A stretch of DNA of 64,000 bases from Haplodiscus bocki (GCA_965655095.1 OZ296648.1:135656001-135720000); one strand, 5' to 3'; shown: positions 29,333 to 64,000, counted from the first letter of the stretch. Translations and numbers: made by a program. Notes: generated by a model not told the origin, from the sequence alone.

Positions 29333-29382
29333 CCAGTGACCGCCACCTGGTGATTTTCACCGGTGCCTCCACTGGGTGGTCA
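29333..29382. other. Conserved terminal/junction sequence with an imperfect hairpin (also 46235-46277 and 47279-47328)
   Basis: The 19-bp core TGCCTCCACTGGGTGGTCA is identical at the three element-element junctions; CCAGTG..CACC.GGTGA-TTT-TCACC.GGTG..CACTGG dyad in E0/E0'. Confidence 0.8.
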
Positions 29383-30710
29383 AGCTTTTTAGCGACACAA
29401 AACTGTTACGAGGCGGGGGAGGGGCCCCTGTGCCGAGTTTCAAAAATCAAGTTTACACTTACACTCAACCCGCCGAAAAGGAGACGATCTCGAAACCTAA
29501 CCATACGATTTTGATGAAACTTTGCATGTGGATAGAGTCCGCCGATGTATGAAGATTTTTGGCACTTACATCATTTTTTTTCTTTTGGTTGGGGAGATAT
29601 GACGCAATGATCCTGTTTTTTGGCAGGTTTCGATGTTTTTCCCGCAATATCTCCACACTTTACCCATAGCATTGGACCCAAATTTTTTGTGTGAAGCACA
29701 TTTGCTGTTAACTACCTACATGCAAAAAATTTTTGGCCAGGGCCTTTTGCCCTAGGAGATATGACCTTTCAAATTTGTCAAAAAGAGGCCAAAATCGAGC
29801 ATTTTGTCATTTCTCCCAGGTTGATGTTAAAAAAGTGATGTGAGCATTCGTCACAACGTGACGGGACCTGTATCAAAAGAAAAATAATTTTGCAGCGAAA
29901 AAATGTTTTGGCCAAATTGCCGAAAATAATGACGGTTATGACGATTTTTTGTCGAAGAAAAAAGAAAAACCTGCTAAAAAAGTCAGTTTTTCTAATTGAT
30001 CTATCTGAAATCCGTCAACTTTTTGAAGGGGCGGCAATCAAGCTTTGCTGAAATTTCGTAGTAAACTACTGGGCTGGCAAACTGTTGGTGACACAAGTTT
30101 TATTCTGGGCCAATTTATTTTTGAAAAAATCTTATCTTTTTTTTCTTCCAATGCCGAATTATTTGTAAAATAATTTGCGAAAATTATGTTATAGTTACAT
30201 AACTGTAGCAACTTTTTTGTCTCAGTGGACAACGAATTAGGTTTGAGGTAATTAGTTGTAAGGAGCTGCACACAAACTTTTCTCTAGATGATCCATTTAA
30301 TTTTTAATGAACATTATATGTACCAACTACAGAAAACAATTTAAACTGTGATAAATAAAAATGTCCAGTGAAACAAAGTAAACTCTCAATTTAACTGCAA
30401 ATGAATGGTAGCAACAATTGACAGTTCATTTTGATGCACGTAAAATAAATCCACTTTACGACAACTCTCATTTTCTTTAACGCCAAATGAACTCCTAATT
30501 TTGGGCAAACACCTTACGGTCGAATGCCTTGTAACAGTCGATGTTGCATGGAAACAACATTCGGTAGTTTGCTAAATGATTACTGGCACATTGTTTTACT
30601 TGTCTGTAATACCTCTCTTGATTCTATAGGTAATTTTTAGCTGTAGTAAAAAATGTCACAACAGTGATTGACATAACATTTCTTTGAGTTTTGTTGCTTC
30701 AATTAATCGT

Positions 30711-31724
30711 TCATCTCATGTTGTTTACATTGTTAGTTGCTGGCAAATTTGCGTTAGCGTGAAGAAGGCGTGGTGGCTGGTTTGTATTGTCTCCAATCCA
30801 AGGAATCACATTGTATTTCAAGTGCACAGGGATCTCAATCGCTGGAGTGATTCGACAAATTCTTACCCTTTGAACATTTTGCGCAATGTTTTCTTCTGTT
30901 AAAGCAGTTTTATAGAAGCCTGACACTCTCCACCCACCATTGCTATTAACATGGTTAGCAACACGCATGACAGCGTCTCTCAAAAGTCCCCTGTCAATTG
31001 ATGTGTATGCCGATCTAATGATAGCCTCCTCACAAAAAAGTTTGGTCAATGACAAACTTTGCAGAACATCCCCTGTTAGAGGATCATCGTCTTCGCTCAA
31101 TATGTCCTGACTAATTACCCTTGCTGACATGACCCACGCTGACAAAGTCGATTTTTGCAAACATGCGCAAATGCTTTCGTTTTTTCTATTTCTTCTGTCG
31201 CACAAAAAACCGGAACAAGTCGGAAACACAGGAATTGCGTGCAAAAACGAAAGGGGTCGGTTTGGGAGACAGAAGTGAAACATTGCACTCGTCGAGGGAT
31301 TCAAATCGATAGGAATAGGCTCCATTGGCGGGTCGTCTGTAACTACCTCTAAAGGAAGAGACACATTAAAAATTGGATTAGTTCGATCGTTACCAAGGCA
31401 GGAGTTGGAAAAAATAGCTTCTTTCACATCAACGATGGCACCAATAGTTAGTTTTCGGTCAGCAAAAAGGAGTGAACTTTTCTGCGCAGAATCTGCTATT
31501 ATTGCAAAACATTCTCGCGTTTCGATTTCGCCGATGATGATTAGGCGATCGTAGTTTGTGTCAGGGCTCATTCGTTTAGCTTTTACAGCTTGCGGTCGAA
31601 ATAACTGTAGGGGACGATCAAATTTTTTAAAAACCAAAACAACACCTCGGATATATGTGTTCTCACTGTTGCGCAAGAAATTGGGAGCAGTTATTTGGGC
31701 CGTATTTACACGGGTGGTCATCAT
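30711..31724 (-). CDS. Conserved accessory protein (~337 aa) with CxGxxCDRR...CxC motif; possible OB-fold/Zn ssDNA-binding protein
   Basis: Colinear and strongly similar to the E2 product (e.g. FSNSCLGNDRxNPIF, AMFHFCLPNRPL). The fold assignment is inference only. Confidence 0.85.
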   Translation of the reverse strand: MMTTRVNTAQITAPNFLRNSENTYIRGVVLVFKKFDRPLQLFRPQAVKAKRMSPDTNYDRLIIIGEIETRECFAIIADSAQKSSLLFADRKLTIGAIVDVKEAIFSNSCLGNDRTNPIFNVSLPLEVVTDDPPMEPIPIDLNPSTSAMFHFCLPNRPLSFLHAIPVFPTCSGFLCDRRNRKNESICACLQKSTLSAWVMSARVISQDILSEDDDPLTGDVLQSLSLTKLFCEEAIIRSAYTSIDRGLLRDAVMRVANHVNSNGGWRVSGFYKTALTEENIAQNVQRVRICRITPAIEIPVHLKYNVIPWIGDNTNQPPRLLHANANLPATNNVNNMR

Positions 31725-33033
31725 CTGGAACAATCTTTTCAAGCATCATCTTATACAACGCGGTTTACACAGTGACATTTCGTCAACCTATTCAGGACGC
31801 AGAACTAATTACTCTCAAAAATTAAAACAAGGAAGATGAAGTTCAACATGATCAAATACAACTTCAGTAAATTTCCACGTCACAGTGAGAATCGCTAGTA
31901 TACATTAAAAGGTTTGATAAAAAACTTCTTGCTAGTTTTCTATTGAAAAAAGTTACATGTTCCTTTACGTGATGCCACGCAAAAGGCGGAACTGACTTCT
32001 TTCAACTTTTTTTCACGTGTCAACAGTTTCAAAGTTCAGTCATCAGTGAATGACGTTTATGTTTGCTCACAATTACATTTTTCAACGAACTTTCACGCAT
32101 CATTAACGGCTGTGAATGTAAATGAAAAGACTATAGGGAATTGAAACGTGTTAATTCAGGATAAAAATTTCTCTTTCGTGAAAACCACTCTAACACGAAA
32201 GAAAACCTTTTCAAAATTAAACAAATCAGTGCACAGACAATGATAGCAATTCAAGAGAAATAAAACAATCGGCAGTTTCTTGACTTCAACAAATGAAGTT
32301 GAATCTAAGTTACATAAAACGTTATTTCAGGGGAAGCAATCTGGTAATGCTTTATTTCAATAAGCAGTTCAATTAGCAATGAAAATTAACAGGCATAAAA
32401 ACAGCGCCGAACAAAGAGCAACATTCATGGGTTTAGCAGTACTCAAAGTCTATGGAAAAACGTGACTGAAGGAAACTAACATACAGGAAGAAACAACGCA
32501 AAGTGACAAATTCAAGGGTTTTATAGGTTGAACTGACATTTATTCGAAAAAATCATTTAATTTTGTTCGGAACTTACAAGATCTAAACACTCAGATAACT
32601 TTACAGTCGATTCCAATTGTATGCACAGTAAAATAACCAATAACTCCTATTTGTTTGCTGCATGATAAAACTGGTGTATCGAATATACGGAAGGAAGCCT
32701 TCATAACATTGGTCGTCGAGGCGTAATACCACACTTTTATCTCTTTTTCAGCTGGAACAGAATGTGATTGCTTTCAGAACCCCAGTCGACGATGAGCAGG
32801 TGTACGTATTCTGCGACGCTCTGTTAAAACAATGGCCATTAAACAATTACAATTGTTCACAATTTTGTCGGCCACATTACGACAACTTTCCGGTGAACGT
32901 TGATACTTTAAAGGAAACATAGAAGAAAGAGAGCAAACACGCGATTACCAAAAAATCAAAAACATGGTACCATGTTAGAAACTGCGTTCATTAATCAACA
33001 ACTACGTCAGTAAGGCTTTGTTACTTGTACTTA

Positions 33034-33324
33034 TCACAGGTCAGAAAAAGGTAGTACAGTACCCAAAACTCTTTTCCTTAGAATGTACATCAAGTTTGAA
33101 ACACCGTGACGAGATAAATGCACGCCATCCATCAAATTCCTTTCGGAGCTCATTTTGCTAGCCACCGACACAAAATTGTATTGACCCACAGAGTTTCTGA
33201 GTCCATCGTTAACCCTTTTGATATCTAAGAGGCAAGGTTTGGATCTCATGACCAGAGCCAGACAGTATACTGTGTAACACTTTGGAATGGCCAGACGCAC
33301 GAGGTACATAATGTCTTGAACCAC
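33034..33324 (-). CDS. SGNH/GDSL hydrolase, exon 2 (96 aa; spliced product 168 aa)
   Basis: Acceptor CTCTTAG|GTG at 33325; 250 bp phase-0 intron; block V DGVHLS. Confidence 0.88.
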   Translation of the reverse strand: MVQDIMYLVRLAIPKCYTVYCLALVMRSKPCLLDIKRVNDGLRNSVGQYNFVSVASKMSSERNLMDGVHLSRHGVSNLMYILRKRVLGTVLPFSDL

Positions 33325-33574
33325 CTAAGAGTTAACAAAAAATTTTTGAGCTGAACATGCACTTCGTTTGATTTTGTTGAACTTTCTTCAAAATTTGGAG
33401 GGAAAAAATATTTTCAGTTGCATTTGAAGCTCTGCTTAATAATTGGAAATTATTTTCGCAGGGAAATATCACCTGCGGATCAATTCATACACAATGCACC
33501 CTGATGTTGCAACCAGTCTAATTCTAAAATGTTTTCAGTCGCAACCAACTTGATATTGTGTTGAAATTACTCAC

Positions 33575-33790
33575 TTGCTCAGGAGTCTTTCCCCGTCGTG
33601 TGCCCCGGCCTGTAAGTCCATTTCCCCCGATGAACAAAATGATTGATTCATAAAACGTTGTTAGGTTTCTTAAACACTCAATTACCCGACGGCAAGATGC
33701 CGTGGCTCCAGGGAAAAACTTCACTTCCAGGTCTTCGTGCTTCATGACAAGTCTTCTCCCAAGGGAATCAGCTATGATAAGATGTTTCAT
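33575..33790 (-). CDS. SGNH/GDSL hydrolase, exon 1 (72 aa)
   Basis: IIADSL (block I), FPGA (block II), FIGGNG (block III); donor CAA|GTGAGT at 33574. Confidence 0.88.
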
Positions 33791-34698
33791 TTAGATCTGC
33801 AGAACGTTGAAAAACAACGACAAGGGGTGACGACAAAAAAACGACATTTAATGACTCCAACAGCATAGGTACACTACGATGGAACACAGAAGATAACTGT
33901 CATTGGCATTATATTATATAATAGTATAAAACGGAAGAGCTGAAAAAAACATCGTTCCAAAAACCTCTAAATATAAATTTGCTCATTTGAGTGTGTCTGG
34001 TTTTTGGTATAGAAGTTTCACTAACGTTTTACCAAGTGTTCCACCTTGCGGTCGAAACAGGAAGGAGTACAGGGCTTTTATCATACACTATGTAGGTGTA
34101 CATCGTTATTAAGACATACACAAAACAAAGCGTTCCATAAGCATATGGGAAAAAAGCAGTGCAAAAAGTTAAAATCACTAATCAATCAACTTTAAATACG
34201 GTGGGCAATCAGGAACGTTCATTGTTAAGGGGCAAATCATGAACACCTGATGCTCCCTTTTAACGTTCCAAAAATCAGGTTCAAATTGCAGCAAAGTCTT
34301 GTCCGCAAAGGAATATTGTCGGATAGTTTTATGTTTAACTAACTTAAACAACGAAACCTTTGGAAAACAGTACGTAGGCTAAATAGTCTGCAGACTACTC
34401 TCAAAGACATCAAAAATTGAACAATTGAATTGTTGTTAATAGTAAAAGAAAAAACTTTCACAAAAATATCTTTAACCACAGCGAAAAGCAAAAACACACA
34501 GACTAAAAACTTTACACGTGCAGCTTTGGAAACCACCGGAGACAAATGAATATATACTATAGATGGACGTTTAAAAAAAACTTTATGTATTGATTAAATT
34601 ATGAACTTTATGTTTTTTATGGGATAAGGCATTCACTTCGTCACATTTGACAGTCGGCGAAGCTGTTGAAATGTAGTTTGCCAGTGTTTTCTAACGTA

Positions 34699-37600
34699 CT
34701 AATGCAATATGGGCTGATTACAGCAAATTACCAACTTCAGGACATCTTCTTTATGAGGCCAATTCATGATTAAGTTTTCTGCTGCTGACAATGCATTCGG
34801 GAGGGAGATGTTCTTCTTCCTCAAGTTAAGCACTTTAGTGACTGCCCCAAGCCACTGTTTTTCAAAAAACCTTATTCTCTCCGTGGAGCTGCTTGCAAGA
34901 AAGCCGGTCACGTAAGCACACAAAACCCAAGGTCTTCGAGAGGGATCATGCGTGAATGAAGCTCCCAAGCCAACATTATGTTCACGAATTCGTCGATTCA
35001 GGCACATTGTTGAACCAATATATAACAAGTTGTTTTGTGGGACGCTCTGAATAACATAACAGTAGCCAACATTCTCTTGCGGTATACTGATGGTTGACGG
35101 AAAGGGGTCTGTAGAGCCATGGAAGATTGTTGGGTCACGGGAAGAACACTTTTGGAGGATCTCGGTAGTCAGCTCCGACCACTGTGACTTTTTACACAAC
35201 AAACTCAGGATGGCTCCTTCGTTGGACTGCTTCGATCCCACGAAAGTGATATCCGCCAGTGATCGAACACGACTCATTACTACGTATAGTTGCTCCGGCA
35301 GCCAAAGAGAAAACTCTTGAGCTCCAACAATCTGCGTAGCAACTGTTGGGAGTGTTTCGCCCATAGTTTTGTGAATAGTTGACGCTACGTACAATTTGAG
35401 GGGAAATTGGATTCTGCGACAAATAGTTCTGTGGTTTAGACGAATGTTAACTCCGATTTCCTTTGCGAGAACAATGCATCTCCAGGATCTTCGTATTACA
35501 GAGAGTGGTGGAATGGATCGGCAACCAGCAGGGGCCAAGGCAACAGTTACTGTTCCGTTGTCAGCCAACGAGTCCAGTGAAACCAAAACACACAGTTGTC
35601 CTTGGAAAGCCATCACATTTGGCTTGTTCACGGTGAGTCGAAGAATTGCTCCGGGGAACAGAAACAATGATTGTGACTCCAAGCATTTCTTATTTAGAAA
35701 CTTTGTTGCAGGTCCAGAAGCTTCTATCCAGTTGTCCGTACTTGACACACACATTTCATCTGTCGATGAACTTTCATAGAACTGGGAACCACTGTCTTTC
35801 ACCTGAATAATTTTCTTGAACGTCGCATATCTTTCCGCTTTGCGAGTAGCAAAAATTCGAATTGTATCATTTGGTACGTCATCCCAGCAATCTACGAAAT
35901 TGCAATTTCGCTCAATCAAACTCCAAATTTGGTTTCCGATGGCAGTTGTTCTTGGAAAAGTTGACATCAGTGACAAAACTTTTTGACCCGTTTCATTTTG
36001 CATACGCACAAAGTGCTGGAGAAAACTAAAATGAAAAGTCGTTAGAGGGAATGAAGAACTGATCAGACAACTTCCTTTTGGTGGAGGGAGTTGAAAAAAA
36101 TCTCCGGTTGCAATGATTAGTTTGCCAGCGAATGGCACGTAGTTTGAGCAGATGATTTGGAAAACGTGGTCCGTCGCAGCCCAAAGTTCACTAGAGATCA
36201 TCGAAATTTCTTCAACAAACAATACATCTAAGTTTTGGAGAAACCGACTTCTGTCCGGTGATTTCTGCAAGCTGGACAAAGCTACTCGAGACAAAGAATT
36301 AACAGTTCCATTTTTCTCCACCGGGAAAGGAATGAGAGCATTTAGATGCTTGCCACCTAAAGCAGCCGACCTTTCGGCCGCTAGTGAAGTTACCATGCAA
36401 TTGAGTCCTTGACATATTGCATAACTCAGAGCTCTCAACATGATGAATGTTTTTCCCGTTCCTGGTGCCCCAGCGATGATTTGATGTCTCACAAAATTTT
36501 GTGTTCCTCCTCTGTACAAGTCCACGATTTCAACTAAATATTTCAAAATCTTACTCTGTTCACAGTACGATGTCACTGTTTGGCTAGGATGTCTACCAAA
36601 GTCCGGTTTCCAATCAACGGGCGCAGTTAGGGAAGCATCAATCATACTTTCTTCGCTTGGAAGTCCCGTTTGACATGTGTGTAAGAACTCCACCAATCTA
36701 CTCTTGCTGATTGTCAAATCTACAGCAACATTTTCTTCGGAGTCGGCAGAGATTGTGCGATCCAAAACAGCTGGTACCCCGGATGCAAAATATAAGTTGT
36801 TTTCTAACAGTGCCTCTCCCAGAACGCTATTTGCCATCAACAAAAACTTGTCAATGAGTTTAGAGGATCCCGGCACAAAGCGGAGCTGTTGCAATAGATA
36901 GCGGCGAGCTAGTTGAAGCACGACTGCAACAGTAATGTTGTTACGCTCCACCAGTTTGGCAGCTATAAAAGATTCCCTGAGAGAGGAAACTGCGAGAATG
37001 TCAAGTTCGGTGTCAAACGAACCAAAAGTTAGCACAAAATGCAACAAGAACTTTGTTGGACTACTGGGTAGAGTATTTGTGAAAACCACTATGGCTTTTT
37101 GATCTGAAAAACAATGATTGTACGCCACCAGTCTGGGGCAACTGTTGGTTCCTTGCAATTTGGGGAGAACATGTTTGCGGCACTCCTGTTTCAAAACTTC
37201 GTCTCTCCGGTTATCACTTCTCGTTGAACAAAAATCAAGAAAATCAGAAATTGCGGGTGGGCGTATCTTGATAGCGTATCCAAGACAATCAACCCAAAAG
37301 TCATTACACGATGCACGGCTCAACAAAATCTCATGACTACTTTTCCCTTTCGAGCTGTTGATTTTGAATCTAACGAACCAACTAAAATAACTTTTCAAAC
37401 TGCTGACAAACAAAAGTTCCGGTGGTCTAAGGCCAAAAATAGTCACTTTGTCAGGCGTAATCGAACTTGCTTCGACATCTGCCAACAACAATTCTTGATT
37501 TCTTGTTAATTGTCGATGTTTTGGAAGCTTCAAAACGTTTTTCCGAATTCGAACAGCTTCGGCAAAAACAGCACTGAAGTTCATCGTCCTCGCAATTTGT

Positions 37601-40600
37601 TTTTCTATCACTATTCCAGATCTGAACTCTTTCGGAACTGTTGGTACATGAATGAAATCTACGTTTGTGCAAACGTATGGCAACTGCAAAGCCCACCACA
37701 AGCATTCAGTTATGCTAACAATTCTTCCTGTTACAGATTTCCGTTTATCATCATCCCGACGTTTTTTGGTAACGCTGGTTTGGACACCAGCTATTTTTTC
37801 GTTCACAATAGGTTCCGTTTGGACTTTCACTTCATCCTCACCAGCAGACGCTACTATTTTTGTGAACGCCCGACCTTCCACGCCGGCAGCATACTTTGCA
37901 ACGTAGCGTGAACACATTTCGTCGTCACAAATTTGGACGTTCGTACTACTTTCAGTGAAGGCAAACAAAGCTGCATTTGTTGGTGAAATGTGCTCGTTGT
38001 AAGCAGCAGGGTAGTGATGCTTTCCAGCTTTCAGTTCTTCCTCAGCTTTGTCTGTTGAAGAGTTAGGGTCAATATAGGACAATTTCATGGCTCTCAACAA
38101 GTCCCAAGTTTCTTCCGAGTAATTAGGTTGTATTTGCTTGTAAGAGAACCCAACGGATGCAGGATATTTAGGTACTCTACACACTGGCTTTCCCAACCAA
38201 TCAGTTTTCTTTTTACATCTATTTTTGCCCTTGCCACAATCGTGCCGTTGGTATTTTTGGAAAAGTTCTCCCAACCGGAACCGTTCGCTATCCGATAACG
38301 CTGGACAACAATCGTTCAAGGCGCCCATGAATGTTTCTTTAGAACAGCAGACTCGGGATTGAACTTCCGGACCAAACTTGTTTTCTCCTGTACACACTAG
38401 TGCATGGATGTGTGGAAAGGCCGAAGTTTCATCTTGCCACTCGTACCTCATCCATAAGTGGGAGACTGGTCCCAGAGGTTGCTCGGCCGAACACTTCAAC
38501 CATTGCATTACATACTGTGAGGCGCGATGCCAACATCTAAGCATAGGCATTAATTCACTTTGTATTACAGATAATCTCAATTCTTTGGATGTCATATCGG
38601 GCGGGTAAAGTTTGTCAATAGCCTCGAAAATTTTGCGCAAGCCGGGGTGAGTAGATTGCCCACATGTGTATGTAACAAAATAAGTGGGGTTTTTATCTCT
38701 AATAAGTGCTGCTACTTCACAGACATTTTTCCGGGATTCTTCACAATCGAACTTGAACGTTTCAGCGGAGTAGTACTGGTAATTTGTAGGCTTACTGCCC
38801 AATTCCTGCCAGCCTCTGTTCAACACAATCCGAATATCGGTTTTACTCAGTTGTAAATTAAGAAGACAATCAAAAACGAACTGCAGATATGATGCGTGAC
38901 TGGAGGTTAAAAGTGACCCATCAGTGATGCGAGTTCGCAGCATGTTTTCTAAACCTGCAAACCCCACTTGTTTGTTGTATTTTTCGGATTGGAACAGGGA
39001 TATTGGAATTGCACCTTCAATGCTGCCATCGAAACTTTGGGACCAGAAAATAGTAGGAAAAAGCAGCCCTTCCGGTTGAAGCAAAGGCGTTGATGATGTT
39101 GAGGAAGCTGTTATGTTTTCCATAAAACGTTTCTCTTTAACGGTTAGGGAAATGGGATGACTTCTTTTCCTGTGCAGTAAGTTGCATCGTGAATTCAACA
39201 GTATGTGGAGAGGAATATTGTAATCTTCTTCTCTGGAAGCCTCTTGTACAGCAACAATGGCCCTTTCACCCGAACAAACGTTCAATTTATTCATGGCCAA
39301 TTGACTTTCGCTGATCGAGTTTGCGTTCATGTTGTTGCACAGAAAAGAAGCTACCGATGAACTTGAGTTTTGACTTAAACAGTTGGTGGATAAATCTGGT
39401 TCAACAAAGCTTTTGTCCTCATCACATACACTAGCTATGTTGGAATTCAGTTCACACTGTGTGGGATTGATTGCAGCTTCAGCGTTCGGTACTTCAGGCG
39501 TTAATTTTCGTTCTGCTAGAGGTGCAACTAAAACTCGTAAGTTCGGATGTTTCATTCCCTCGTCGAAGTGTTTCTTACACACACAACTGTTGCACTTTGA
39601 GTAGGCACATCTGAGGAATGATGACCTTCCACATCGACAGAAGTAGTTACTACGTCGGAAGTCCTTTGTTAACGGAACATCATGTTTGTCACAAATGAAA
39701 ACTCCTTGGCCGCTTAAATTACTGAGATAGTGCCACTTTACAGTCGACACCTTTTTAGAGTTAGTTCCTCGGTAGATTAAAAACGTCCAGTAGCCTCGTA
39801 GAATTTTTTCTACTAAGGTCTCAGGTGAGTCCAACAAAGGTTCAGCAAACTTGTTAGCTTTGAGTATACGCCAAAAATTGCAGAAGCGACCACCATGCCG
39901 AAGCAAAATTACAGCATCTGTACCCCGAGAACCGCAACCACATCCCACAAGCTCAAATTGGACATCAAATAGGACGATGTTGAGAGGTGGGTTGACCTTG
40001 TTCCTCAGATTGTTTACATCAGTTGTTGTAGCAATCACGTGTTTCGTATCCACTTTTACGTCGCGCAGAATTTTCTCAGTCAATTCTATTCTTTGGCTCA
40101 ACTGCAGATGGCATAAGTCAGCACATAATGCGTGCAACACCACGCCACCCGCCTGCAAAAAGTTTGAAATTAGGATTGGGTTGTCATTGTTAGTTGCCGC
40201 GTTATTCAATATACTGTCAATGTCAGCTTGAGCTTCTGAAATACGCTGCAACTTGCTTTCTTTTCCAAACCGAGCAAATGTATGACGCAACAGTGAAAAC
40301 ATATTTTTTGCCAAAACGTGATTAACGCCAGACACCATGGATGAACATAAAATTGGAGATATGCAGCATGCCGCTTGAAGAAACCAGAGTGTATCTCCAG
40401 TATCATTGATCAGAGGAGGAGGTGAGCAACCATGTTCATTGTTTGGTTGAGCCAAAGCGTAGCACTGTAGAAATTTCACATTACTCAAAAGTTCTTGTTC
40501 GTTTTTGTCCATCACCTTCGTCAATCGAATGCAGGTGTCAAGATCTACGCCGACATGCTCCATCAATTTTTCATTTTTCGGCTGATATTGAGAGAGATCA

Positions 40601-42798: not shown

Positions 42799-42994
42799 TA
42801 CTCTTTCACAAGCAAATTCGCGCAAAAGTTTATCAATCACTCATCTTTAATAGTGAATACATTGTAAAGAGTTGGCGCCATTATAGAACCAACGTACAAA
42901 ATGACATCGTTTTGCTCGGCTTTCAAACTGTTCAATTAAGGGAAGCATCTAATTAATTCGGAAATCAGTATCCAGAAAAACATATGCAATGTGG

Positions 42995-43032
42995 GCCTTG
43001 GTTTTGCGCAGGTAACGAAGCAAAACCAAGGC
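42995..43032. promoter_or_regulatory. Perfect 13-bp inverted repeat, 12-nt spacer, upstream of E1 RepHel
   Basis: GCCTTGGTTTTGC-N12-GCAAAACCAAGGC; identical arms in E2. Confidence 0.8.
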
Positions 43033-51693: not shown

Positions 51694-51961
51694 CTAACAA
51701 TAAAACAACAGGAAAAAAGGGAAAACAAATGAAGTACTGCTGAGATATTAAAAACCCAAAGTAACGGTTCAATAATAGTTTGCAAGTAGCACTAGTTAAA
51801 GCACCAGTAGAAAGACGCAGAATTGAAAACAACGTTTTCCTAGACTTTTACTAACGTATTTCAATAAAGGATTTGACAAAACACAAAAACATTCCAAATT
51901 TTACTGTCGTCTAATTTGATTTTGCAAACAGTAACCCCATGAAACATCACTTAAGCTTTAC

Positions 51962-52177
51962 CTGTTCTGGAGTTTCAGCTGGACGCCGGCCCCAATTGGA
52001 AAGGCCATTCCCTCCAATGAAAATTGTAATGGATTGAAAGCGGCGCCGCAAATTTTCCAGGAAACTCGTTACACGTTGGTCCGCCACTCTGGCGCCAGGA
52101 AAACATTTAACTGCCAAATTTTCAAGCACACCTTCCAGTTGTACGCCCAGAGAGTCGGTTATGATCAAATGAGCCAT
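51962..52177 (-). CDS. SGNH/GDSL hydrolase of E2, exon 1 (72 aa)
   Basis: IITDSL, FPGA, FIGGNG; donor CAG|GTAAAG at 51961; same exon length as E1. Confidence 0.88.
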
Positions 52178-52754
52178 AATGATCTGGAAGCACTGTGAAA
52201 AACGTCGGTTTCTGCAGCTTCAGGTATCATCCCCGAATACGGGGATACAGTAACAAGAGTGCCTCAATCAACAATGTCAAAATTTGTCATTTAACGTATG
52301 ATTATAATTGTTTTTCAAAAAAACTTGAAAGTAACCTAATTTCTATTGTCCAAAATTAACGGCGCATTTTTAAATGGACTATTTCTAGTGCTTGGAAAAT
52401 CAAAGTCCTTCAGATCAGATTCAGTCAAAGTCAATCCCCTCAAGCTAATGAATTAAACAGACACATACAAGTAATTAGCAACAAATCATCTCAACTGCAA
52501 AATAGATAATGCAACACTATGCAGTCGAAGCATTATCGTTTCCAGCAAAAAGGTTCATGTTGTTGCACGTGCTACTTGGTACATCACTCTGCAGCCGATG
52601 CGGTTGCAGCATAACATAAAGCGAAGTTCACCATTGCACCACTATGCAGTCGATGCGTATCGCTGTCAAGGCAAGGAAGTTTGTGAGCAAGTAAAACAAT
52701 TATCCGAAACTAATCCATAAGCTTTTGAGCAGCTTTCTCCTAAAGTACGACTTT

Positions 52755-55700
52755 TCAAGACACAAGTGATGACCTGCAGCACACTACTAGTTTCAAATCA
52801 TCTTCTTTGTGTAGCCAATTTTTTGCCACAATTTCCCCCAAATTGATAGCTGTGGGAAGTGACACATTTTTCTTTTTTTGTGTTGACGTAGTGTGATGCC
52901 GCATTCAGCAAATCCTTCTCGAATGCTCGGATTCTCTCTGAAGCATTAGTCCAATTGAAACCAGTAACATAAGCACAAACCATCCAGGGCAAACGATTTT
53001 GTACCTTGGTGAAGACGGAACCCAGTCCTGCATTGTGCTCTCGCAAACGACGCGCTAACGACATAGTGGAGCCAATGTACAGAAGGTGCTGCTGTGGTTC
53101 ACTTTGGAGCAAGTAACAGAACCCCATATTTTGAACGGGTAGTTCTCTCATTGAAGGGGGAAAAGGGGAGGCTCTTGCATGATCAATTGTAGGGTCACCA
53201 GCGGAACTTTTAGTCAAAATTTCATTCGTGAGTTCAGCCCATTGCGATTTTTTGCAGACTAAATCCAAAACTGCTCGTTTGTTAGATTCCTTCGATCCAA
53301 CAAAAGTCACCTGATTCAGACTTCTTACTCGACTCATTACAACATAGAGTTGTTCGGGAAGCCACAAAGCGAAATCTTTCGATCCAACTATTTGGGTTGC
53401 CACCATCGGAAGCGTTTCACCCATTGTCTTATGAATGGTTGACGCAACAAATAAATTTAGTGGAAATTGGATTCGTCTGCAAACCGTTTTGTGGTTTAAT
53501 CGGCGGGTAACACCAGTTTCTTTGCTGATAACAACACAACGCCATTTGTTTTTGATCACAGCAAGCCGTGGAATACTTCGGCAACCAGCTGGTGCTAGAG
53601 AAATTGTCACAGAGCCATTCTCAATTGTATCCAAAGAAAGTAGAACACAGAGTTGACCCTGATACGCGGATATAGATGGCATGTTCACTGTTAGTCGTAA
53701 AATGGCACCGGGGTACAGAAACAACGACTGGGGTTCAAGACATTTTTTGTTGAGAAAATTTGATGTACTTGGCGATGCCTCGGTCCAGTTGTCAGTGCTT
53801 GAAACGCACATTTCATCAACTGCTGCATTTTCATAAAATGGCGTACCGCTGCTTTTAACATCGATTATTTGGTTTTCAGTTGCTTTACGTTCTGCTTGTC
53901 GAGTGGCAAAAATTCGAATTCTGTCATTCGGTACGTCTTTCCATGAATAGACAAAATTGCAACCTTTATCGATTATTTCCCAGATACGCCTCGCATTGCC
54001 GTCAGTTTTTGGAGTCGCTGACAACAAAGACAACAGTTCTTGGCCTTTTTTGTTTTGCATCCGAACGAAATTTTCCAGTTTGAGAAAAGTGAAAGTTGTG
54101 AGAGGAAGAGAAGAACTCATCAAACAAGATCCTGATGGTGGAGGAAGTTGGAAGAAATCTCCGGTTGCAATAACAAGTTTCCCACCGAATGGAACATAAT
54201 TTGCTGTGATAACCTGAAGCACATAATCCGTGGCAGCCCAAAGTTCGCTAGAAATCATTGACAATTCTTCCACGAAAAGAACGTGTAGATTTTGCAGAAA
54301 GCGGCACTTAATAGGAGATCGCTGTAAATTGGAAAGGGCTGTTCTGGAGAGCGCTTCTGCAGAAGCATGCTTTTCCACTGGAAATGGGATGAGGGTATTC
54401 AGATGTTTTCCAGCCAAAGCGGCAGATCTTTCAGCAGCCAAAGATGTCACTACACAGTTGAGACCTTGGCATAAAGCGTATGCAAGCGATTTTAGCACAA
54501 CGAACGTTTTCCCACTTCCTGGAGGTCCAAAGACAAATTGATGCCTGATGAAAGTGCAGAGTCCTTCTTTATAAATGTCGATGGAACTCAACAGTTTGTC
54601 TAATACACGCTTCTGTTCCGTATAAGAGTTTCGGCATTGATCCGGGTTTTTCTGAATGACTGGTTTCCAAAGTAAAGGGACGGCGATGGTTGCATCTAGC
54701 ATCGCCTGCTCAGTAGGTAATTGTTTCTGACAAGTGTGAAGAAAAGCTACCATTTTGCATTTTTCCATACTGATTTGCACTGCTAGTGTTTCTTCGTATT
54801 CTTCAATGACACTTCTGTCCAGCACAGGCGGTAGCGCAGCAGCGAAATAAAGGCTGTTGACTAACAGAGCCTCCGAAAGAACACTGTGAGCCATCAAAAG
54901 GTATTTGTCAATTAGTTTCGAGGACCCAGGTACAAAACGCAGCTGTTCCAGCAAATAATTTCGTGTTAAATTTTGCACGGTTTTAGCGTTTATGTTGCAG
55001 CTTGGAATAAATTTAGCTGTTGTGAAAGCTTCTTTGAAAGATTGCACGTTCAGAATGTCCATCTTTGTGTCAAATTCTCCATTAGTCAAGAGCAAATGTA
55101 GTAGAAATTTAGTTGGGTTATTCGGCAAAATGTTACTGAAAACAACCACGGCATTTTCTTCGGACAACTGCTTCCAGTGAGCAACAAATTGTGACGCGTT
55201 TTTCGTCACAAGCAACGGAACAATGTGTATTCTCATTTCGCGTTTCAGAATCCCATCCCGTCCATCGGTACCATTTGCACGACAGAATTTTACAAAAGCG
55301 TCCACAGACCAAGGGCGTAGTTTAAGCAAATACCCCAATGCATCAACCCAACAACTTCTGCGGAGGCTTCTCTTCAAGAACACTTCATGATTGCTGATGG
55401 ATTTTTTTGTTTGAGGTTTACAACGAACAAACCAACTGTAATAATTTTTTAACTTCGAGACAAACAAAAGTTCAGGTGGGCGGAGTCCAAAAACTGTTAC
55501 TTTGTCTGGCGAAATAGAGCTGTTTTCAACATCTGCGAGACGAAAACTTTGTGTCCTAGTGAACTGCCGGTGCTTTGGGAGTTGTAAAACGTGTTTCCGA
55601 ACTCGGATTCCTTCCATGAATGTGGCGCCCAACTTAATAATATTGCTAAAGCGTTTTTCAGTGACAATTCCAGATCGATATTCTTTCGGAACAGTTGGCA

Positions 55701-58700
55701 CGTGAACAAAATCGACATTTGTACAGACATACGGAAGTTGTAAGGACCACCAGAGACACACTGTTATGCTGACAACACGACCAGTTACCGATTTTTGTTT
55801 TTCATCGCCTCTCAATTTCTTTAGCGAAGCCTGTACCCCAGCTATTTTTTCATGTGCGATTGGTTCTGTCAAAACTTTGACACTATTTTCTGTTTCACCA
55901 GCGACAATTTTGGCAACTGCTCGAGTTTCAATGCCGGATGCATATTTTGGAACGTAGCGGGGGGCCATGTAGTCGTCACATAATTGAACATTATTGCTGG
56001 ATTGTGTCAAAGCAAAAACAGCAGCGTTCGTTGGTGAATAATGTTCGTTAGAAACAGTGGGATAATGATGATTTCCGGCGGTTAAAGGATCTTTCACTTT
56101 TGGGACTAGCGAGTTTTCATCTATGTCTGCTAAATCCATTTCTCGCAAAAGTCCCATTGTTTCGCAGGAAAAGTTCACAGGAATTTCCTTGAAAGAAAAA
56201 CAATTCGAAGGAGGATATTTAGGCACACGACAATTTGGTTTCTCCATCCTGTCTGTCTTCTTATGGCAACGTTTACGGCCTTTGGAACAGTTATGGGTTT
56301 GATACTTTTGGTAAAGTTCACCCAGATGGAAACGTTCGACTGCGTTCAATTCGGGGCAACTGATTTCTAAGCCACCCAAAAACGTTTGTTTTGAACAGCA
56401 AACACGAGATCGTACATCATCACTAAATTTATCTTCTGGTGTGCACAAAATAGCATGCAAGTGAGGAAAGCCAGCTGTCTCTTCCTGCCATTCGTACCTC
56501 ATCCAAATATGAGACACAGGACCCAGTGGTTTTTCTGGTGAATTCTTCACCCATTCCATTACATATTGAGAGGCGCGGTGCCAAGACCTGAGCATGGGCA
56601 TGAGTTCAGCTTGAATTGCTGCTGAAAGTACTTCCTTCGGAGTGGTTTCTGCGGGATACATTTCATGCAGTGCTTCAAAGACTTTCCGAATCCCCGGGTG
56701 GGTCGATTGACTACAAGTGTAGGTCACAAAGTAGGTTGGATTTTTGTCTCTAATTAAAGCCGCAAGTTCGCAGACATTTTTTCGACTTTCCACACAATCA
56801 AACGTGAAAGTTTGAGTCGAAAGAAATGAGCAATTACGAGGAGCAGAATTAACTTCTTGCCATCCTCGATTTAGTATTACCCTAATGTCACTTTTAAGAA
56901 GCTGCATGTTCAAGAGGCAATCAAACACATACTGCAAATAAGTAGGATTGCAAAATGTCAAGAGAGAACCGTCTTTGATTCGAGTTCGAAGCATGTCATC
57001 CAAACCAGCGAAACCCAGCTGTTTGTTGTACCTGGATGAATTGTATAAAGCAGTTGGTATTGCTCCTTGAAAACTGCCGCTGCTAGCTTGACACCAAAAA
57101 ATCGATGGGAAAAGAAGAGCCTCGGGCTGAATGAGCGGTAATGCAGACGTCGAAGTAGCTGAAATATTTTCAAGGAAACGTTTTTCTTTCAGGGAAAGGC
57201 TGATTGGATTCACGTTACGTCGATAAAGAAGATTGCATTGTGAGTGTAAAAGAATATGGAGCGGTAGTTTGAAAGCATCTTCTTTTCGTTCATGATCCAC
57301 GGAAATAAGTTTTTCATCTGGGTTGGTTTTTAATGTGGCCATTATTCTCAAGTTGTCATCTTCGAATTCTTCGTTATTTCTTTCCGGATGAAGAATAAAA
57401 CTGACAGAAGAACTGTTGCTTGATGCAATCTCAAACGTTTCTGTTGCCGCATCTGGTTGAATTGGTTCAGTTGCAGAGATGTTGTTGGGATCAATAAAAT
57501 CCCGTGAGGAAGATGATTCCGATACTATAGAAGGGGAACTCATTTTATTCAACTTCTCCAACGGTACCGAATCAATTAAAATACGTCTGTGTTGCTGCTG
57601 TAGACCTTCATTGAAGTGACGCTTGCAAACGCAAGAGTAGCATTGCAAATGCGGGCAGCGCAAAAACGATGCACGACGACATCTACATTGGAAACCACTC
57701 TTTCTGAAGTCTCTGGTTAAACGAATTGTGTGATGTGCACAAATAAAAATACCCTGACCGGTCAAAGTGCTCAGAAATTTCCACTTCAAATCAATCAATT
57801 CAACATTTCTCGATATTTGATAAATCGCAATTGTCCAATATCCCCGAATTAAAGTTTCCAAGTTATCATTCGGGGAACCTTCTGTTTTTTTGGCAAATTT
57901 TGTACTTTTCTCAATGAGCCAAAACCCTTGAAACTTTCCTCCATGTCTAACCAACCACCTCGGTTCTCCCTTGCTGCTTCCATCCTTCGTTCCAACTGCG
58001 ATCAATTCAAATTCATTATCGGAAATAATCAGGGTTAACGGTGGTTCAACCTTGTTCCGCAAACTTTTTGGGGAACCTGTCGTAAAATGGCATGGGTCAT
58101 GTTGTACGAAATTTGCTCTCTGGTGGCTGAACCGATATTTTTCCGTTTGTCTAAGGGAAAGTGTTGAATGGTGTTACAAATTTTTGATAGAAACCTTGCT
58201 CCTACAAAACAACAACAGTCGGCTGTTCCTTCTGTTTTGTCATCACTTTTATTTTATTCAATTACAGCTGATACAGCTTGTTCGCATTTTTCAACAAGAC
58301 ATAAAACTCTTGCTGTATTCATTCTTGCGCTGCCAAGCAACACTTTCCTGAGTAAAGTGAACAAAGGCCTAAGTGTCACACTGTAATTTGATGAGTTCAC
58401 TAAGGAACGACAAAGTATTGGGGAAACACAAGCTGCAGCCTGCACAATCCACGAAACTATGCTAACTCTATTTTCTAGAGGAGGTGGAGAGCAGCCGTAA
58501 TCATCATTCCCATGAACGGGAGTGTAACAACTCAACAACTCAACATTGTTGAGATATTCTTTTTCATTCTTTTCGACTATTTTTGTGAGGTCCAGGCATG
58601 TTTGTAAGTCTATTGAAGTGGCCTGTGACAAACAACTGTTGACTTTCGTATTGTCCGGTACATAATCCAGCATTCCCGAAGCTACGTCATCAAGGATTTT

Positions 58701-60812
58701 ACCCTGTCTTACCCACTCACGAATCATTGTTTTAATGTCTTCTCTGAAATGACAAGCGACGCCTTCAGCATGATACAAAATGTCACTAGTGAAATCCCAG
58801 CGCGTTTTCCGCTTCAATCGGACTGTGCTCATTCCACTGTAAGAGCCAACACTTCTTAGCAATTGGTACGTATGACTTGCGAAGTTGGCTTTGATGCTTG
58901 AGATGAACGACAATGTGGGTGCGATGGCACTAAGACGTTCTTCATAATTCACTGTAGTTCGCCCCAGCGAAGGATGTGATGGCGGATGAAAGTACCGCAC
59001 ACTGGAGCCTCTTGAGTGCATGGAGCAAGTCTGAACCACGATTCCAACTTTTTCATCAACTCGCACTGTAGTTGCTACTAGGAACTGGCGCAGGGACACA
59101 AATGGTGTCAAAAAGTCGGATCTAATTCCTCTTAGATGCAGCAGGCTGCAGGACTGGAACGAGGTAAAGTCTCTCTCAAAAAAGTTGATGAAATGATTTG
59201 CGGGTATCCAACCTGATTCTTCAATGAAACACCAGCACCCATATGGGCAGCGGACGTTGGGATAAGGTTCATTGTCCAGGGCAAGAGCAATGATAGTCTG
59301 CTTCAAGGTTTTCATGAGTTTCTCGAAATAACGCAAACGAAGCGTCCCATCAACGGAACATTTCCCAGCAATCCGTTTCCGACTTAGACATCTTTGAACG
59401 CACAGGGGAAAGTAGTGCACGGATGTCATCCACTGTTGTCTCACTCCCCAAGGTAACAAAGACAAAATATCCATTTGGGTTCTAACTGGCCTGTCTTGAT
59501 CACTCAATAGGCTGAAAAACACAGACGGCCAAGCATTGTACCAATCATAATTTTCGGTTGTGCAATAGAGAAGACAGAGCTTACATAAAGCAACAATGGG
59601 TCCCGTTAGCTTGTTTCCAAACACACGGTTTTTAATATCAAGTTTATTCTTCCTCGTCAATTTTAAAGGGTAAAGAACTGTTGACTGGCGCATGCATTTT
59701 GCGCAACAGTCAGATCCGCCCGAATTGGGGCACTCGCAGTTCGTGTGCATATTTGTTGAAACACTATCTGTTGGGGAAAAGGCAGAACATGGGGCGTCCA
59801 GCATTTGTGAACAATCGTTGTTTAGGAGGTCCGTTGATATTGTTGATAATGTTTCCAAGGCCGAAAGTTTCTTCATATTGGTAGATACTGAAATGTTCAA
59901 GGGACTTGTTGCGAGAGTCTTTGGGTGCTCTTCCCAGGCGTAATCAGAATGGACTTTTCTTTTTTTCGAAGCTGGTTCAGTTTCAGTTGCTTCGCAGTTC
60001 TGCAATGCTTGAGTCCAGTGATTATTTTCGCTTAATTGAGAAAAAGGGCGATCAATTGATCCAACTTGCGCTACGCTGGAGCTTTCAGGACCCAGTGAAA
60101 CTAGCTCTGTTATCACCTCGAAGTGATTTGCATTCCTGTTTTGTTGAATGAAAATTCCTTCTCGTTTTACGTTGGAGGAACATTCATAAATCATCCAGGA
60201 TTGGAACAGAACATGGTACAAAAACACATCGACTTTGAAGATTTGGCAAATTGAATATATTTCAACACAGCTTCCAAAAACGCCATTTTCTGCCATTCTA
60301 GATTCGCGGAGGTACTCATGGACGGAAGTACAATTCAAAATATGATGTTGGTTGGGAAAGTCGTCGGAGTAAACAGATGTTTGCAGGCTATTAGGGGGGG
60401 AACTGATTAAATTCATGTGGCTGACAATAATGTTTCGTATGATTGGGCCACATTCATGTGACAGCCCGAGAGCAACTGCCAGAGAGGAAAAAAGGCAATT
60501 ACCGTCCCCAAGCACTGCTGTTACCCGGACTGGCTGCGTGGAGCAGATAACTGTATCATTTCCGATAGCTGTTACTATAGGCTTCCAAAAGTCAATCAAC
60601 CCCAAAGTGTTCAGCGAGCTGTGTATCTCCGTTCTCGCGGCAGGTGAGACAGAAACTGAAGCATCGGGAATTTTGTATAAAATTCCTAAAGACTCATTGG
60701 CCTGAAGTTCAACTTCAATTGATTTTGCACACACATGATGTTCTCCAACAAATTGTCCACAGGAAGTACAACGTCGACGCTTTAAGTTTCCTTTGCTGTT
60801 TTGCTTTGACAT
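52755..60812 (-). pseudogene. Disrupted RepHel (OTU-Rep-Pif1-GIY-YIG) of E2
   Basis: Same motifs as E1 (GDGNCLF, PHLHA, YVPKY, GPPGSGKT, YIGST). Lesions: TAA at 58254-58256, 1-bp loss in the A-run 58084-58087, and 1-bp gain in the T-run 52873-52879 (the corrected frame reads NWLHKEDDLKLVVCC, matching E1 NWPHKEDVLKLVICC). Confidence 0.9.
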
Positions 60813-61073
60813 TGTCAAACACAACAGACATTAGTTCAATGGGATCATAACTATATGAAAGAACAAAAAGTTACAATACAACCACACGTTGAATAACTTG
60901 CAGGGAAATTCGTATAGCAGGTAAATACATCAAATTGTCGTTTGAGCAAAGTCTTTTGGGGTTCGATTACAAACCGTTGCCTGTCTAGTTAATTCTAAGG
61001 GTCGATGCAGCGGAAAAGATAAGCAAGTACGGTAAAAAATCATAATTCGTTTCCAACCATTCATAAACCAGGC

Positions 61074-61111
61074 GCCTTGGTTTTGCGAACGGAATGGAGC
61101 AAAACCAAGGC
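61074..61111. promoter_or_regulatory. Same 13-12-13 inverted repeat upstream of E2 RepHel
   Basis: Arms identical to 42995-43032; spacer sequence differs. Confidence 0.8.
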
Positions 61112-64000
61112 TTCCTCAGCAGATTTACTGACTTCAATCAGACACGACGTAAATTTTCAGTTTCACAAACAATTTGGAAAATTGAAAATTTTTGGCAAAA
61201 AATCGCAGCAAGTAACTGAAGTTGCGTAAAAGTAAGGCCACAAAAGTTTTTGAGAGGTTCTTAGTGCTTCCGACTGGTGTAAACCAGGCATCAATTTAAT
61301 TTAGTTGTTGCAGGTGAAAATTTCTCGTATTCAAGGGCCTGAAAGAAATCAGTAACTTTGTTTCACCTATAAAACATGTAGCTTGTTTTAACAGATGTAA
61401 AAATGAAAAGGTCTGTCCATATTCCGAAAAAAATGACTTATACAAGACGAACAGAGACCACATTTAATATACGAAGAAGCTCATGAGTTCTGTAGTCTAA
61501 AAAATGCATTTAATAACAATTTCATAAAAATGAGGGGGGTAGACAGAATTGTTGCTACAACAATTTTGTTTCAGTTGGGAGAAACAATGGGAAGCTTTAC
61601 ATTTCCATCATTCTTCGTCGAAATCTCTTTTTCTCTCACAAAATTTGAGAATCAAATTTTCAGCGCTCATTTCAGTGAACTACAACGTAAACCACTACTG
61701 AATGTTTTTGGGCGTCAAAAGAATGAACTTAGTAATTTTTTCATAAAACTTCAACGTTGGGAACCTTCTTAAAATCAAGAGCTTAGTAACAAATTCTACA
61801 AACCGTATTCGCTGTCTTTTTCATGTCGTTTTGTCAACGTTGATAGTTGAACAGGCACACTGATAGAACAGAGGGAAAGTTTCAAGAATCCAGATTGGAA
61901 AAACCTTGACGAAAACATAAAAAAATTGGATCAAGGAGGTTCTAAAAGTGCCATAGGTTTGAGCAATTCCAACTGCCTAGCATTTTTCAGACACAGTTAA
62001 TCGTTGTGATATAGTTTCCATCTTGGACTTGAAAAACTGAATTGGTTAAAGTCTTTCATCAATATGGCTATGACGCCGTTGTTTCTTATTGTGTCTTGAT
62101 TCCGTCTATTGACATTTAGATAAAGATCATTTTTCGGCTGATCTATTACAAGTGAAGTTTTTTTGAAATTTTTGAATTTCTGGCAGTGGAGTCATTTCTT
62201 TAAATCTTTACTGCAGGAAAAAAAGGAGCCTCAACGTGGACCTCACGATTCGAAAGCATTGAGTTTTAAACGTCGAAGCTAGCCCAAGAGAGAAAATTGA
62301 CAATTAATGAAAATAATATTTCCTGAAAGAAACCTTCCACAGCCAGCAATTACACGTGAGAAAACGTTACGCATATTAAACAGATGTTTATAAAGTTAAA
62401 ATTGAAATACCTTTCAATTTTTAATCAATCACTTTACAAACTTCAACGAGGGCTTATATATGTCTTCGGTGAAACATATGTCAAACGTGAACAGTCGATC
62501 TAGCATAAGGTTGAAGAAGTGAATTGTCATCCGTCCAGCAAAAATGCAAATGACTCTGGGGGATCAGAGTATCAGGATGGGATTTGGAAGAAAAACCTTG
62601 TGAATAAAATAGTAATATCAACAATAAAAAAAATAAAATGCTTCAGGAAAATCAATTATTTAAGATGAGGAAAAAAATCAAACAACGGAAGGAGTAATTT
62701 GAAACTCGGTAAAATGTTGAACAATTGATAGAATTATACAGCTGAAGAAATGCTCCGTTAACTGCTCAATCCGGAGTATCGAAACTCATTGATTCCGCGA
62801 AAACATGAGAAATTTTGAATTGTCAGTACAGTCTTGAAAGAAGGTATTTATATATAGGAAAACAGCATTTCGGAAAATTGGTTGGGTGCGTTTTCCAAAT
62901 ATGTTGACCGCAAAAGCAGGACAGTCATGTCAATCGGAAGTCATGAGTAGAAAACGAAATTATTTAGAGAAAATAGCTCGGACAACCTTGTAAACAAATG
63001 AAGAAAGCGAATTAACGGGAAAACATCAAGCCACAATGAAGCGTGCAGTAGTTTTCACTGATTTTCTAATCAAGTGCTGATTGAACAACAATATTGGTCA
63101 GTGAAACTTTATACCACTACAAGGGGAAACGGGACCATTGCCGTCAAGAAACGGTTGATTCAAACAAAAAGATAGAGCTACACCGCAGGAAGCCTTAAAT
63201 CAAGAAATGATTGTGATCAATCGTGTTATCCATTACAAAACAAAACAAAGGAAAAATAAAAATTACCTACTAGATGCGCAATGCAACGTTTCCATTAAAA
63301 GAAAACCACAGATGCCCGGAAAAAAATTTGCATTTGGCGCCGATCAGAAATAAGGCATCATACCGTTGCCTCTTTTTTGTGAACAGTAAAATTTCATTAA
63401 CAAAACTATTCAGAAATTAAAATTCGAAAGCGGAGGAAGGGGCGGTTGATATTATTTAGACACATTTTCCAAAAAAAACCCTTTTAAGTCATAACAATCA
63501 TTGGAACCCTTGAAAATGAGTTTCATTGGTATCAGAAAGTGGAGAACCTTCCTCGTGATTTTTGAGGTTCAAACAACGCGTAAGGTTCCTGCAAGCCACC
63601 CGTTTCCAACATTCTGATGTTTGTTCATTAAATATTAGTATCCCGTTGCAAAGTCCCATTATCATGACTATCTCTGCAGAAGACATTAGAAGCAGCAAAA
63701 CATTTGTTTCTTCCACCAAGGCAGAAGCCAAACATACCTTTGGAGTGCGTAATTGAACACCAATCAAGTTTTTTCTTTGTTTAAAGAAACAAAAACAGCT
63801 GTGAGAGACAAAAAACGATTTCTCTGGAAACAGCTGCAAAAGAAACAGCAAAAGTTGAGGTAAAAATTTCGAGTTTAAAACAAACCTTTATTCACATTTA
63901 TTATTTTAAGTACGAATAAATTATAGAAATGAATTTGACAATAACGCAGAATTTTGCTAGCTGGAGAAAAAGCTCAAAAGCAGCTATTAAACTGAAATGT

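Follow-up and report, generated by a model that had tools for sequence, protein, structure and literature searches.

A head-to-tail array of probable Helitron-like transposons with a GIY-YIG-fused transposase beside a satellite in Haplodiscus bocki

In Haplodiscus bocki, a stretch of 64,000 nt (GCA_965655095.1 OZ296648.1:135656001-135720000; here called the window) holds a satellite followed by large repeated units with several genes each, and the question it raises is whether these units are rolling-circle transposons and, if so, of what kind. The satellite occupies positions 1-28322, Helitron-like elements, all on the minus strand, extend from 28323 onward, and the window contains no runs of N. 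We read the region as a head-to-tail array of rolling-circle (Helitron-like) transposons of one deep lineage, with a probability of about 0.8. A preliminary description, made from the sequence alone, had proposed a Helitron-like family with three genes, and this was borne out by two minus-strand elements having the same genes in the same order, with an intron at the same codon.

Array layout and the RepHel transposase

The order along the array is E2 (to 47321), N1 (47320-46270), E1 (46269-29375), N2 (29374-28323), and then the satellite from 28322 downward. The autonomous elements are ~17 kb each. E1 (29375..46269, minus strand; 16.9 kb) is complete and has the junction motif GACCACC/CAGTGGAGGC (the slash marking the boundary) on both sides; its mapped 3' end at 29375 lies within 4 bp of position 29379, from which the preliminary description had the family begin. 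E2 (47321..64000, minus strand), the second autonomous element, is ~65% identical to E1 in DNA, and its 5' end, judged from the copy at another retrieved locus (L006), falls ~0.4 kb past the end of the window. N1 (46270..47320, minus strand; 1051 bp) is a non-autonomous unit with E2 on one side and E1 on the other, and N2 (28323..29374, minus strand; ~1.05 kb), likewise non-autonomous and non-coding, has its own 5' hairpin and 3' palindrome. When E1 and E2 were compared with BLASTN and TBLASTX, three coding blocks aligned at 64-67% nucleotide identity; outside them, only a 3' terminal block of ~610 bp (with N1 or N2 beside it) and a 38-bp hairpin could be aligned, and the other intergenic DNA gave no alignment by either program, in keeping with its earlier characterisation as mostly unalignable.

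The largest gene, RepHel, combines an OTU domain, a Cys/His-rich region, an HUH Rep domain, a Pif1 helicase and a GIY-YIG nuclease in one giant protein. In E1 its open reading frame (ORF; 34699-42840, minus strand) is intact and consists of 2713 codons in one exon, with the first Met at 42798 (coding sequence 34699..42798). RepHel of E2 (52798..60812, minus strand) has the same domains and a frame break between 58063 and 58253, which lies in a weakly conserved linker and splits the gene into ORFs 58254-60824 and 52798-58062. Pfam matches in the E1 protein were to OTU (amino acids 114-213), Helitron_like_N (1377-1482), PIF1 (2094-2253), and GIY-YIG (2592-2666); there was no Pfam match in RepHel to an AP-endonuclease (Exo_endo_phos) domain.

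Two hallmarks of Helitron-like elements are thus present: a Rep domain with an HUH motif and two Tyr residues, and a Pif1-type helicase C-terminal to it. The Rep endonuclease domain (37888..38712, minus strand) has the motifs PHIHAL (HUH) and RYxAKYAAG (two Tyr) and scored 27-31 bits against Helitron_like_N, at or under the Pfam threshold. The helicase domain, of the Pif1 type in superfamily 1B (35221..36561, minus strand; Walker A GxPGxGK), matched PF05970 with an E value of ~1e-11 in both copies, and in the PDB it matched cellular PIF1 (1.9e-12) and Helraiser (7lcc; 8.7e-6), the Rep domain of Helraiser remaining unmatched. The C-terminal end of RepHel is formed by the GIY-YIG domain (34843..35067, minus strand), which scored 36 bits against a Pfam cut-off of 22.6 and has the SLX1 proteins as its nearest solved relatives. 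The catalytic Tyr, Tyr, Arg, and Glu of this domain were conserved across 19 homologues, as were PHIHAL, RYxAKYAAG, and Walker A, so the earlier proposal of a GIY-YIG nuclease in the position of the AP-endonuclease stands. The search yielded 22 RepHel relatives, all from ENA or Logan assemblies, and GIY-YIG was found in 17 of them, down to 28% identity.

The N-terminal half carries the remaining conserved parts. The OTU cysteine-protease domain (42202..42501, minus strand) has the Cys box GDGNCLF, kept in 14 homologues, and its scores against PF02338 in the two copies (22.4 and 20.7 bits) were slightly below the cut-off of 23.3. Between OTU and Rep lies a conserved Cys/His-rich region of ~1160 amino acids (38713..42201, minus strand), which maps the Cys-rich spacer previously put at ~1100 amino acids; many of its Cys and His residues are invariant, and searches with Pfam and PDB profiles gave no match to it. 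At the very N-terminus (42736-42798 in E1 and 60750-60812 in E2, minus strand), a basic KRRR is followed by a CCHC knuckle of the form C-x2-C-x7-H-x-C, and both are kept in E1 and E2 despite an identity of only 46% in the surrounding N-terminal part.

Two accessory genes downstream of RepHel

Gene C of E1 (30711..31724, minus strand) is intact and encodes 337 amino acids in a single exon; that of E2 (48962..49972, minus strand) has one in-frame stop, at 49259-49261. The preliminary description had left its product as an unknown Cys protein, a label that should be replaced: by its predicted structure, gene C encodes an RPA70-like protein with tandem OB folds and a zinc ribbon. AlphaFold2 (AF2) run with 10 close homologues gave a model of unusable confidence (predicted local distance difference test score, pLDDT, of 35), and the prediction was redone with an alignment of 100 sequences, giving a pLDDT of 90.5 and a predicted template-modelling score (pTM) of 0.88. 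This model shows a pair of OB folds, and in the second of them a Cys4 zinc ribbon, as in DNA-binding domain (DBD) C of RPA70; of the ribbon residues C170, C175, C186, and C188, the first three are invariant and the last is present in at least 90% of the 100 sequences. The eight best Foldseek matches in the PDB were all RPA (archaeal proteins and human RPA70) or CST/CTC1, the best being 8c5z_A (1.3e-4, probability 0.92), then 8oej, 7u5c, 9pd4_N, 7uy5, 4gop, and 9a1v; lower matches included SSB (1se8), RPA70 DBD-AB (1jmc), and Teb1. No Pfam family was found among 100 diverse members, and a PDB profile search was blank. Gene C is therefore a predicted single-stranded DNA binder, on its modelled fold the RPA-like accessory protein classical for Helitrons, and this identity brings the architecture closer to known elements, making it not wholly new.

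In an exhaustive profile search, the gene C family comprised 427 representative clusters; the closer homologues formed 14 clusters, all from ENA assemblies, and wherever genomic context was retrieved they followed a GIY-YIG-bearing RepHel. Two loci hold gene C relatives of 20-25% identity (L008 7866-12203 and L010 1008-3582) beside ORFs with weak matches to RPA-type OB families (DUF223, tRNA_anti-codon, and Rep-A_N), with RepHel not in view. The gene C family may be part of multi-subunit RPA-like modules of other elements.

Gene B lies between RepHel and gene C and encodes 168 amino acids. In E1 (all minus strand), its exon 1 (33575..33790; 72 codons) contains ADSLG, FPGA, and GGNG, corresponding to SGNH blocks I-III, and is followed by a phase 0 GT-AG intron of 250 nt (33325-33574) and by exon 2 (33034..33324; 96 codons and a stop), which contains DGVH, corresponding to block V. 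Gene B of E2 (51415..52177, minus strand) is intact as well, with exons 52177-51962 and 51693-51415 and an intron of 268 nt. In both elements exon 1 measures exactly 216 nt, and in four copies (E1, E2, and those at loci L006 and L007) the phase 0 GT-AG intron follows the same Gln codon; the donors of E1 and E2 are GTGAGT and GTAAAG, and a polypyrimidine tract and AG are present at both acceptors. The blocks (A/T)DSLG, FPGA, G(G/A)N(G/A), and DGVH keep their positions and order in the four copies, and the ordered SGNH pattern, picked post hoc, arose in 1 of 200,000 shuffles. On these motifs we lean slightly toward an SGNH fold for gene B. The texim genes, SGNH genes associated with teleost Helitrons (PMC4021074), resemble it in that they contain introns, show the S, G, N, and H blocks, and neighbour the coding region of a Helitron; by their description they differ in lying upstream and having several introns, whereas gene B has two exons and lies downstream of RepHel. 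The roles of gene B and of the OTU domain would be auxiliary.

In a more distant clade (L002-L005, and L013 from a third sample), the slot of gene B is taken by an intronless ORF of 184-228 amino acids, whose blocks AASS, PG, HDAxNNSL, and DLHL look similar; a PDB profile search with this ORF was blank.

Junctions, satellite and a possible route of transposition

All element boundaries in the window are marked by a 17-nt junction, GACCACC/CAGTGGAGGC, which recurs at loci L001, L006, and L007 and was present also in the distant clade (L002, L003, and L005). Comparison with L001, L006, and L007 showed that the similarity between copies stops at sharp, recurrent points. The upstream unit ends with a palindrome, GCGAGGC...GCCTCGC, a spacer of ~36 nt, and then ...GTGACCACC, and the next unit begins immediately with CAGTGGAGGCA(A/C)CGGTG.... 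In E1, the 3' terminal block (29375..29990, minus strand; ~610 bp, ~65% conserved with the matching E2 and N blocks) has the G+C-rich palindrome ~36 nt before its end and GACCACC as its last bases, and the 5' terminal sequence (46225..46269, minus strand) begins with CAGTGGAGGCAACGGTG. As the candidate nick-site sequence for Rep we take GACCACCCAGTGGAGGC. The ends, CAGTGG... and ...GACCACC with the 3' palindrome ~36 nt from the end, are not of the form 5'-TC...CTRR-3' and are thus non-canonical, as described before. A search for asymmetric terminal inverted repeats gave only matches of 8-10 nt and of chance quality, and no inverted repeat was shared by the termini of E1, E2, and N; a 9-nt complement between the 3' end of N and its 5' hairpin was dropped, since neither E1 nor E2 retains it. 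In the distant clade, RepHel is on one strand and the junction motif on the other (L002 ~11796, L003 ~11797, and L005 ~12175, on the minus strand of these loci), so that the gene block there is inverted relative to the termini when compared with E1 and E2.

The two N units are 99.9% identical, non-coding over 1051 bp, and placed as direct repeats flanking E1. Their 5' hairpin spans ~45 nt (DNA fold z = -4.2), and the 3' palindrome is present in them too; N1 and N2 are non-autonomous relatives of the autonomous elements. The occurrence of a near-identical N pair beside autonomous elements that differ by 35% suggests either a very recent event or a rolling-circle copy of more than unit length. 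At other loci, one to several N-like units of ~1.05 kb, or tandem repeats of ~350 bp, stand between consecutive elements (L007 8340-12130; L002 11900-14860; L003 12235-13804 and 17520-18727), and the family thus seems to be characterised by tandem repeats beside the terminal block.

At the other end of the elements, more than 3 kb separates the 5' end from the RepHel start codon (42841-46224 in E1 and 60825-64000 in E2), an unusually long leader. These regions, 3.4 kb long in E1, have no conserved coding signal and no DNA similarity to each other except for the 38-bp hairpin, which lies at 42995..43032 (minus strand) in E1, ~200 bp 5' of the RepHel ATG, and at 61074..61111 (minus strand) in E2, ~260 bp 5' of the start codon. 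It has a stem of 13 bp and a loop of 12 nt in E1; the stem (GCCTTGGTTTTGC and GCAAAACCAAGGC) is perfect and identical in E1 and E2, the loops differ, and the DNA fold z values are -5.4 and -5.6. The hairpin recurs in other copies (L001 15927-15962 and L007 15365-15400) and may serve as a promoter, as a site akin to an origin, or as an RNA element. Searches of the window for tRNA genes and Rfam families gave no match.

The satellite (1..28322) is built of ~190-bp monomers, with higher-order repeats that are 1333 and 1836 bp long, and shows a strong strand asymmetry, the plus strand being rich in G+T. Each monomer contains, on the minus strand, GTGAC(G/A)ACACC/GAGACCGTTCAC. The 3' end of N2, ...GTGACCACC, directly adjoins the satellite, and the sole junction between element and non-element DNA (28322/28323) thus reads ...GTGACCACC/GAGACCGTTCAC, which corresponds to ACC/GAG in the satellite, not T/T. 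The element end thus resembles the left half of the site that it abuts; this likeness may stem from the choice of target, from termination where a sequence looks like an end, or from microhomology. The satellite monomers were not found in any other retrieved locus.

On the basis of established Helitron and HUH biology, the following route may be proposed. Rep would nick the 5' end at or near GACCACC/CAGTGGAGGC, the Pif1 helicase would peel off the strand, the RPA-like protein encoded by the element would coat it, and synthesis would stop at the 3' block with its G+C-rich palindrome. The GIY-YIG domain would nick the target or the second strand, a job ascribed to the AP-endonuclease in Helentrons. 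Arrays could arise by read-through around a circular intermediate, in which case N1-E1-N2, with its 99.9% identical N copies, would be a copy of more than unit length. Alternatively, arrays may form when a new copy inserts precisely where a resident one has its 3' end; the sole non-element junction seen lies at a place in the satellite that looks like this end of the element.

Relation to known elements and alternative readings

Canonical HLE1 elements begin with 5'-TC, end with CTRR-3', and have a hairpin ~10 nt before their 3' terminus, and HLE2 elements insert between T and T. With HLE1 (Helraiser, PDB 7lcc), the family described here shares the rolling-circle logic, a two-Tyr HUH Rep, Pif1, and RPA-like accessory genes; it differs in having neither terminal motif, and its weak match to Helraiser (8.7e-6) concerns the helicase only.

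Among the rival explanations, the likeliest is that the family is real and lies inside described Helentron/Helitron2 (HLE2), near HelenSM92, for example, or among unexamined Repbase or Dfam entries, so that nothing but its annotation would be missing; we regard this as quite possible, if somewhat short of an even chance. Shared with HLE2 are a RepHel of HUH and Pif1 type with OTU N-terminal to Rep and a nuclease C-terminal to the helicase, an RPA-like gene, hairpins near the ends at least in N, non-autonomous derivatives, and the association with tandem repeats. In the literature, OTU, RPA, and AP-endonuclease are named as possible components of HLE2 elements, with OTU upstream and the endonuclease downstream of RepHel (PMC11417382), Helitron2 elements have been reported with both gene orientations, with a hairpin at either end, and with terminal inverted repeats that are short and asymmetric (PMC3627910), and satellite association is known for Helentrons, oyster derivatives of which carry satellite-like repeats (PMC7492417). 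There is even a published case of GIY-YIG in an HLE2 family: the text of the HELIANO survey of 404 genomes, which names 20 stably included domains, mentions GIY-YIG once, as a domain captured in the moss element HelenSM92 (PMC11417382). Both the GIY-YIG (HelenSM92) and the SGNH (texim) associations thus have precedents.

Several observations stand against placing the family there. The nuclease is a GIY-YIG of SLX1 type, not the AP-endonuclease of Helentrons, and GIY-YIG is not among the stably included extra domains named in the HELIANO text (PMC11417382); among the papers examined, GIY-YIG inside a Helitron-like element was reported only by this paper and its preprint. HelenSM92 of Sphagnum magellanicum, which could be compared by its description only (PMC11417382), resembles our elements in having a GIY-YIG domain besides RepHel, but there the domain was captured in one moss family, whereas here it is an in-frame fusion whose catalytic residues are kept down to 28% identity. 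The ends (...GACCACC and CAGTGGAGGC...) show no convincing asymmetric terminal inverted repeat, and the one visible flank, a single case, is not T/T; further differences are the conserved ~1160-amino-acid Cys/His region, the SGNH-like gene, and the size of ~17 kb. Finally, none of the 22 RepHel matches in 5.8 billion proteins was a named relative. The further-reaching reading, that these elements form a third deep rolling-circle lineage of eukaryotes outside HLE1 and HLE2, with an independently acquired GIY-YIG nickase, an RPA-like protein of its own, and site-specific insertion at sequences like its 3' end, we consider unlikely.

That genes B and C are host genes captured passively in two old copies, with no role in transposition, is in our view very improbable. 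Helitrons often capture host genes (PMC11417382), gene B has a spliceosomal intron as a host gene would, it is absent from the degenerate first element of L001 and from L012 and L014, and distant relatives of gene C occur without a visible RepHel. Amino acid identity between E1 and E2 is, however, 56% for gene B, 64% for gene C, and 46% (N-terminal part) or 58% (remainder) for RepHel, and in all three genes the proportion of synonymous differences (pS, 0.79-0.90, i.e., saturated) far exceeds that of non-synonymous ones (pN, 0.22-0.38), indicating purifying selection despite saturated synonymous divergence. Between E1 and the 89% identical copy L007 from another assembly, the dN/dS ratio (omega) was 0.14 for RepHel over 1193 codons, with values of 0.20 and 0.49 for genes C and B, respectively; between E2 and its 91% relative L006 it was ~0.6, which fits a decaying copy.

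The genes also travel together. L006 (E2-type) and L007 (E1-type) have all three, including the gene B intron; L002-L005 (RepHel ~38% and gene C ~53% identical) and L013 have RepHel, the same-slot ORF, and gene C; and in the clades at 33-36% RepHel identity (L012 and L014), gene C comes straight after RepHel, without gene B. The co-occurrence of the three genes elsewhere, which the preliminary description had named as a check, was found as same-order trios down to ~38% RepHel identity, and at 33-36% only RepHel and gene C were seen. Gene C follows RepHel in every clade examined that had enough downstream sequence, across at least four samples and with RepHel identity as low as 33%, and the middle slot is occupied by a gene in distant clades as well; relatives were located on Mb-scale contigs in several ENA assemblies. 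This pattern indicates a stable core of RepHel (with OTU and GIY-YIG) and gene C, to which the middle gene is an addition at the level of the clade. Given the conserved order, the purifying selection, and the fact that the genes turn up next to RepHel again at independent loci, deeper clades included, the three-gene set is selected and not passively captured, as had been proposed.

It is scarcely credible that the units are immobile, whether as a cluster of host genes duplicated in tandem or as a fragment of an endogenous virus beside a satellite: all copies seen lie in head-to-tail arrays, with no solo insertion or insertion with an empty site among them, and many gene C relatives are on metagenome contigs of 2-8 kb, but a Rep with HUH and two Tyr fused to Pif1 is the hallmark of Helitrons, the many diverged copies are on different contigs with different neighbours, the junctions are sharp and conserved and bound short non-coding units with the same ends, and the elements contain no capsid or polymerase gene.

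For the reading that we prefer, an array of rolling-circle transposons of one deep lineage, the lack of an empty site among the copies seen is one of several points that weigh against it. The exact ends, the target, and the lack of a target-site duplication are thus provisional, and the nick site was deduced from just one junction, at which there is microhomology. The 5' hairpin of E1 itself is weak (z = -0.45). E2 is damaged, with both the frame break in RepHel and the stop in gene C. Read-through alone is insufficient to explain the arrays, because they mix elements that are only 65% identical. As for gene B, the earlier name of SGNH hydrolase was right about the intron and finds the motif blocks in order, but searches of Pfam, NCBIfam, the PDB with phmmer, the PDB with a profile of exon 1, and for homologues were all blank, and an hhalign comparison of gene B with the ORF that fills its slot in the distant (53% gene C) clade was not significant.

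If the family is what we take it to be, rolling-circle transposons would have solved the problem of the extra nickase at least twice, with an AP-endonuclease in Helentrons and with GIY-YIG here. A GIY-YIG nickase is found in Penelope-like retroelements, and an AP-endonuclease in their sister group, the LINEs; Penelope-like elements, too, have a mobile-element enzyme fused to GIY-YIG, but they are retroelements with a reverse transcriptase, and the likeness is one of analogy only. The choice of endonuclease would mirror this split and offer a natural experiment on the role of the nuclease. The intact E1, the near-identical pair of 1-kb N units, and the 17-nt candidate nick site are the ingredients for a transposition assay, and gene C defines a large RPA-like family (427 representative clusters) outside the coverage of Pfam. 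How rolling-circle elements generate tandem repeats is a question on which both the precise, heterogeneous arrays and the junction with the satellite have a bearing; should the third-lineage reading prove true, site-specific insertion would produce arrays of head-to-tail copies and could give rise to satellites or colonise them.

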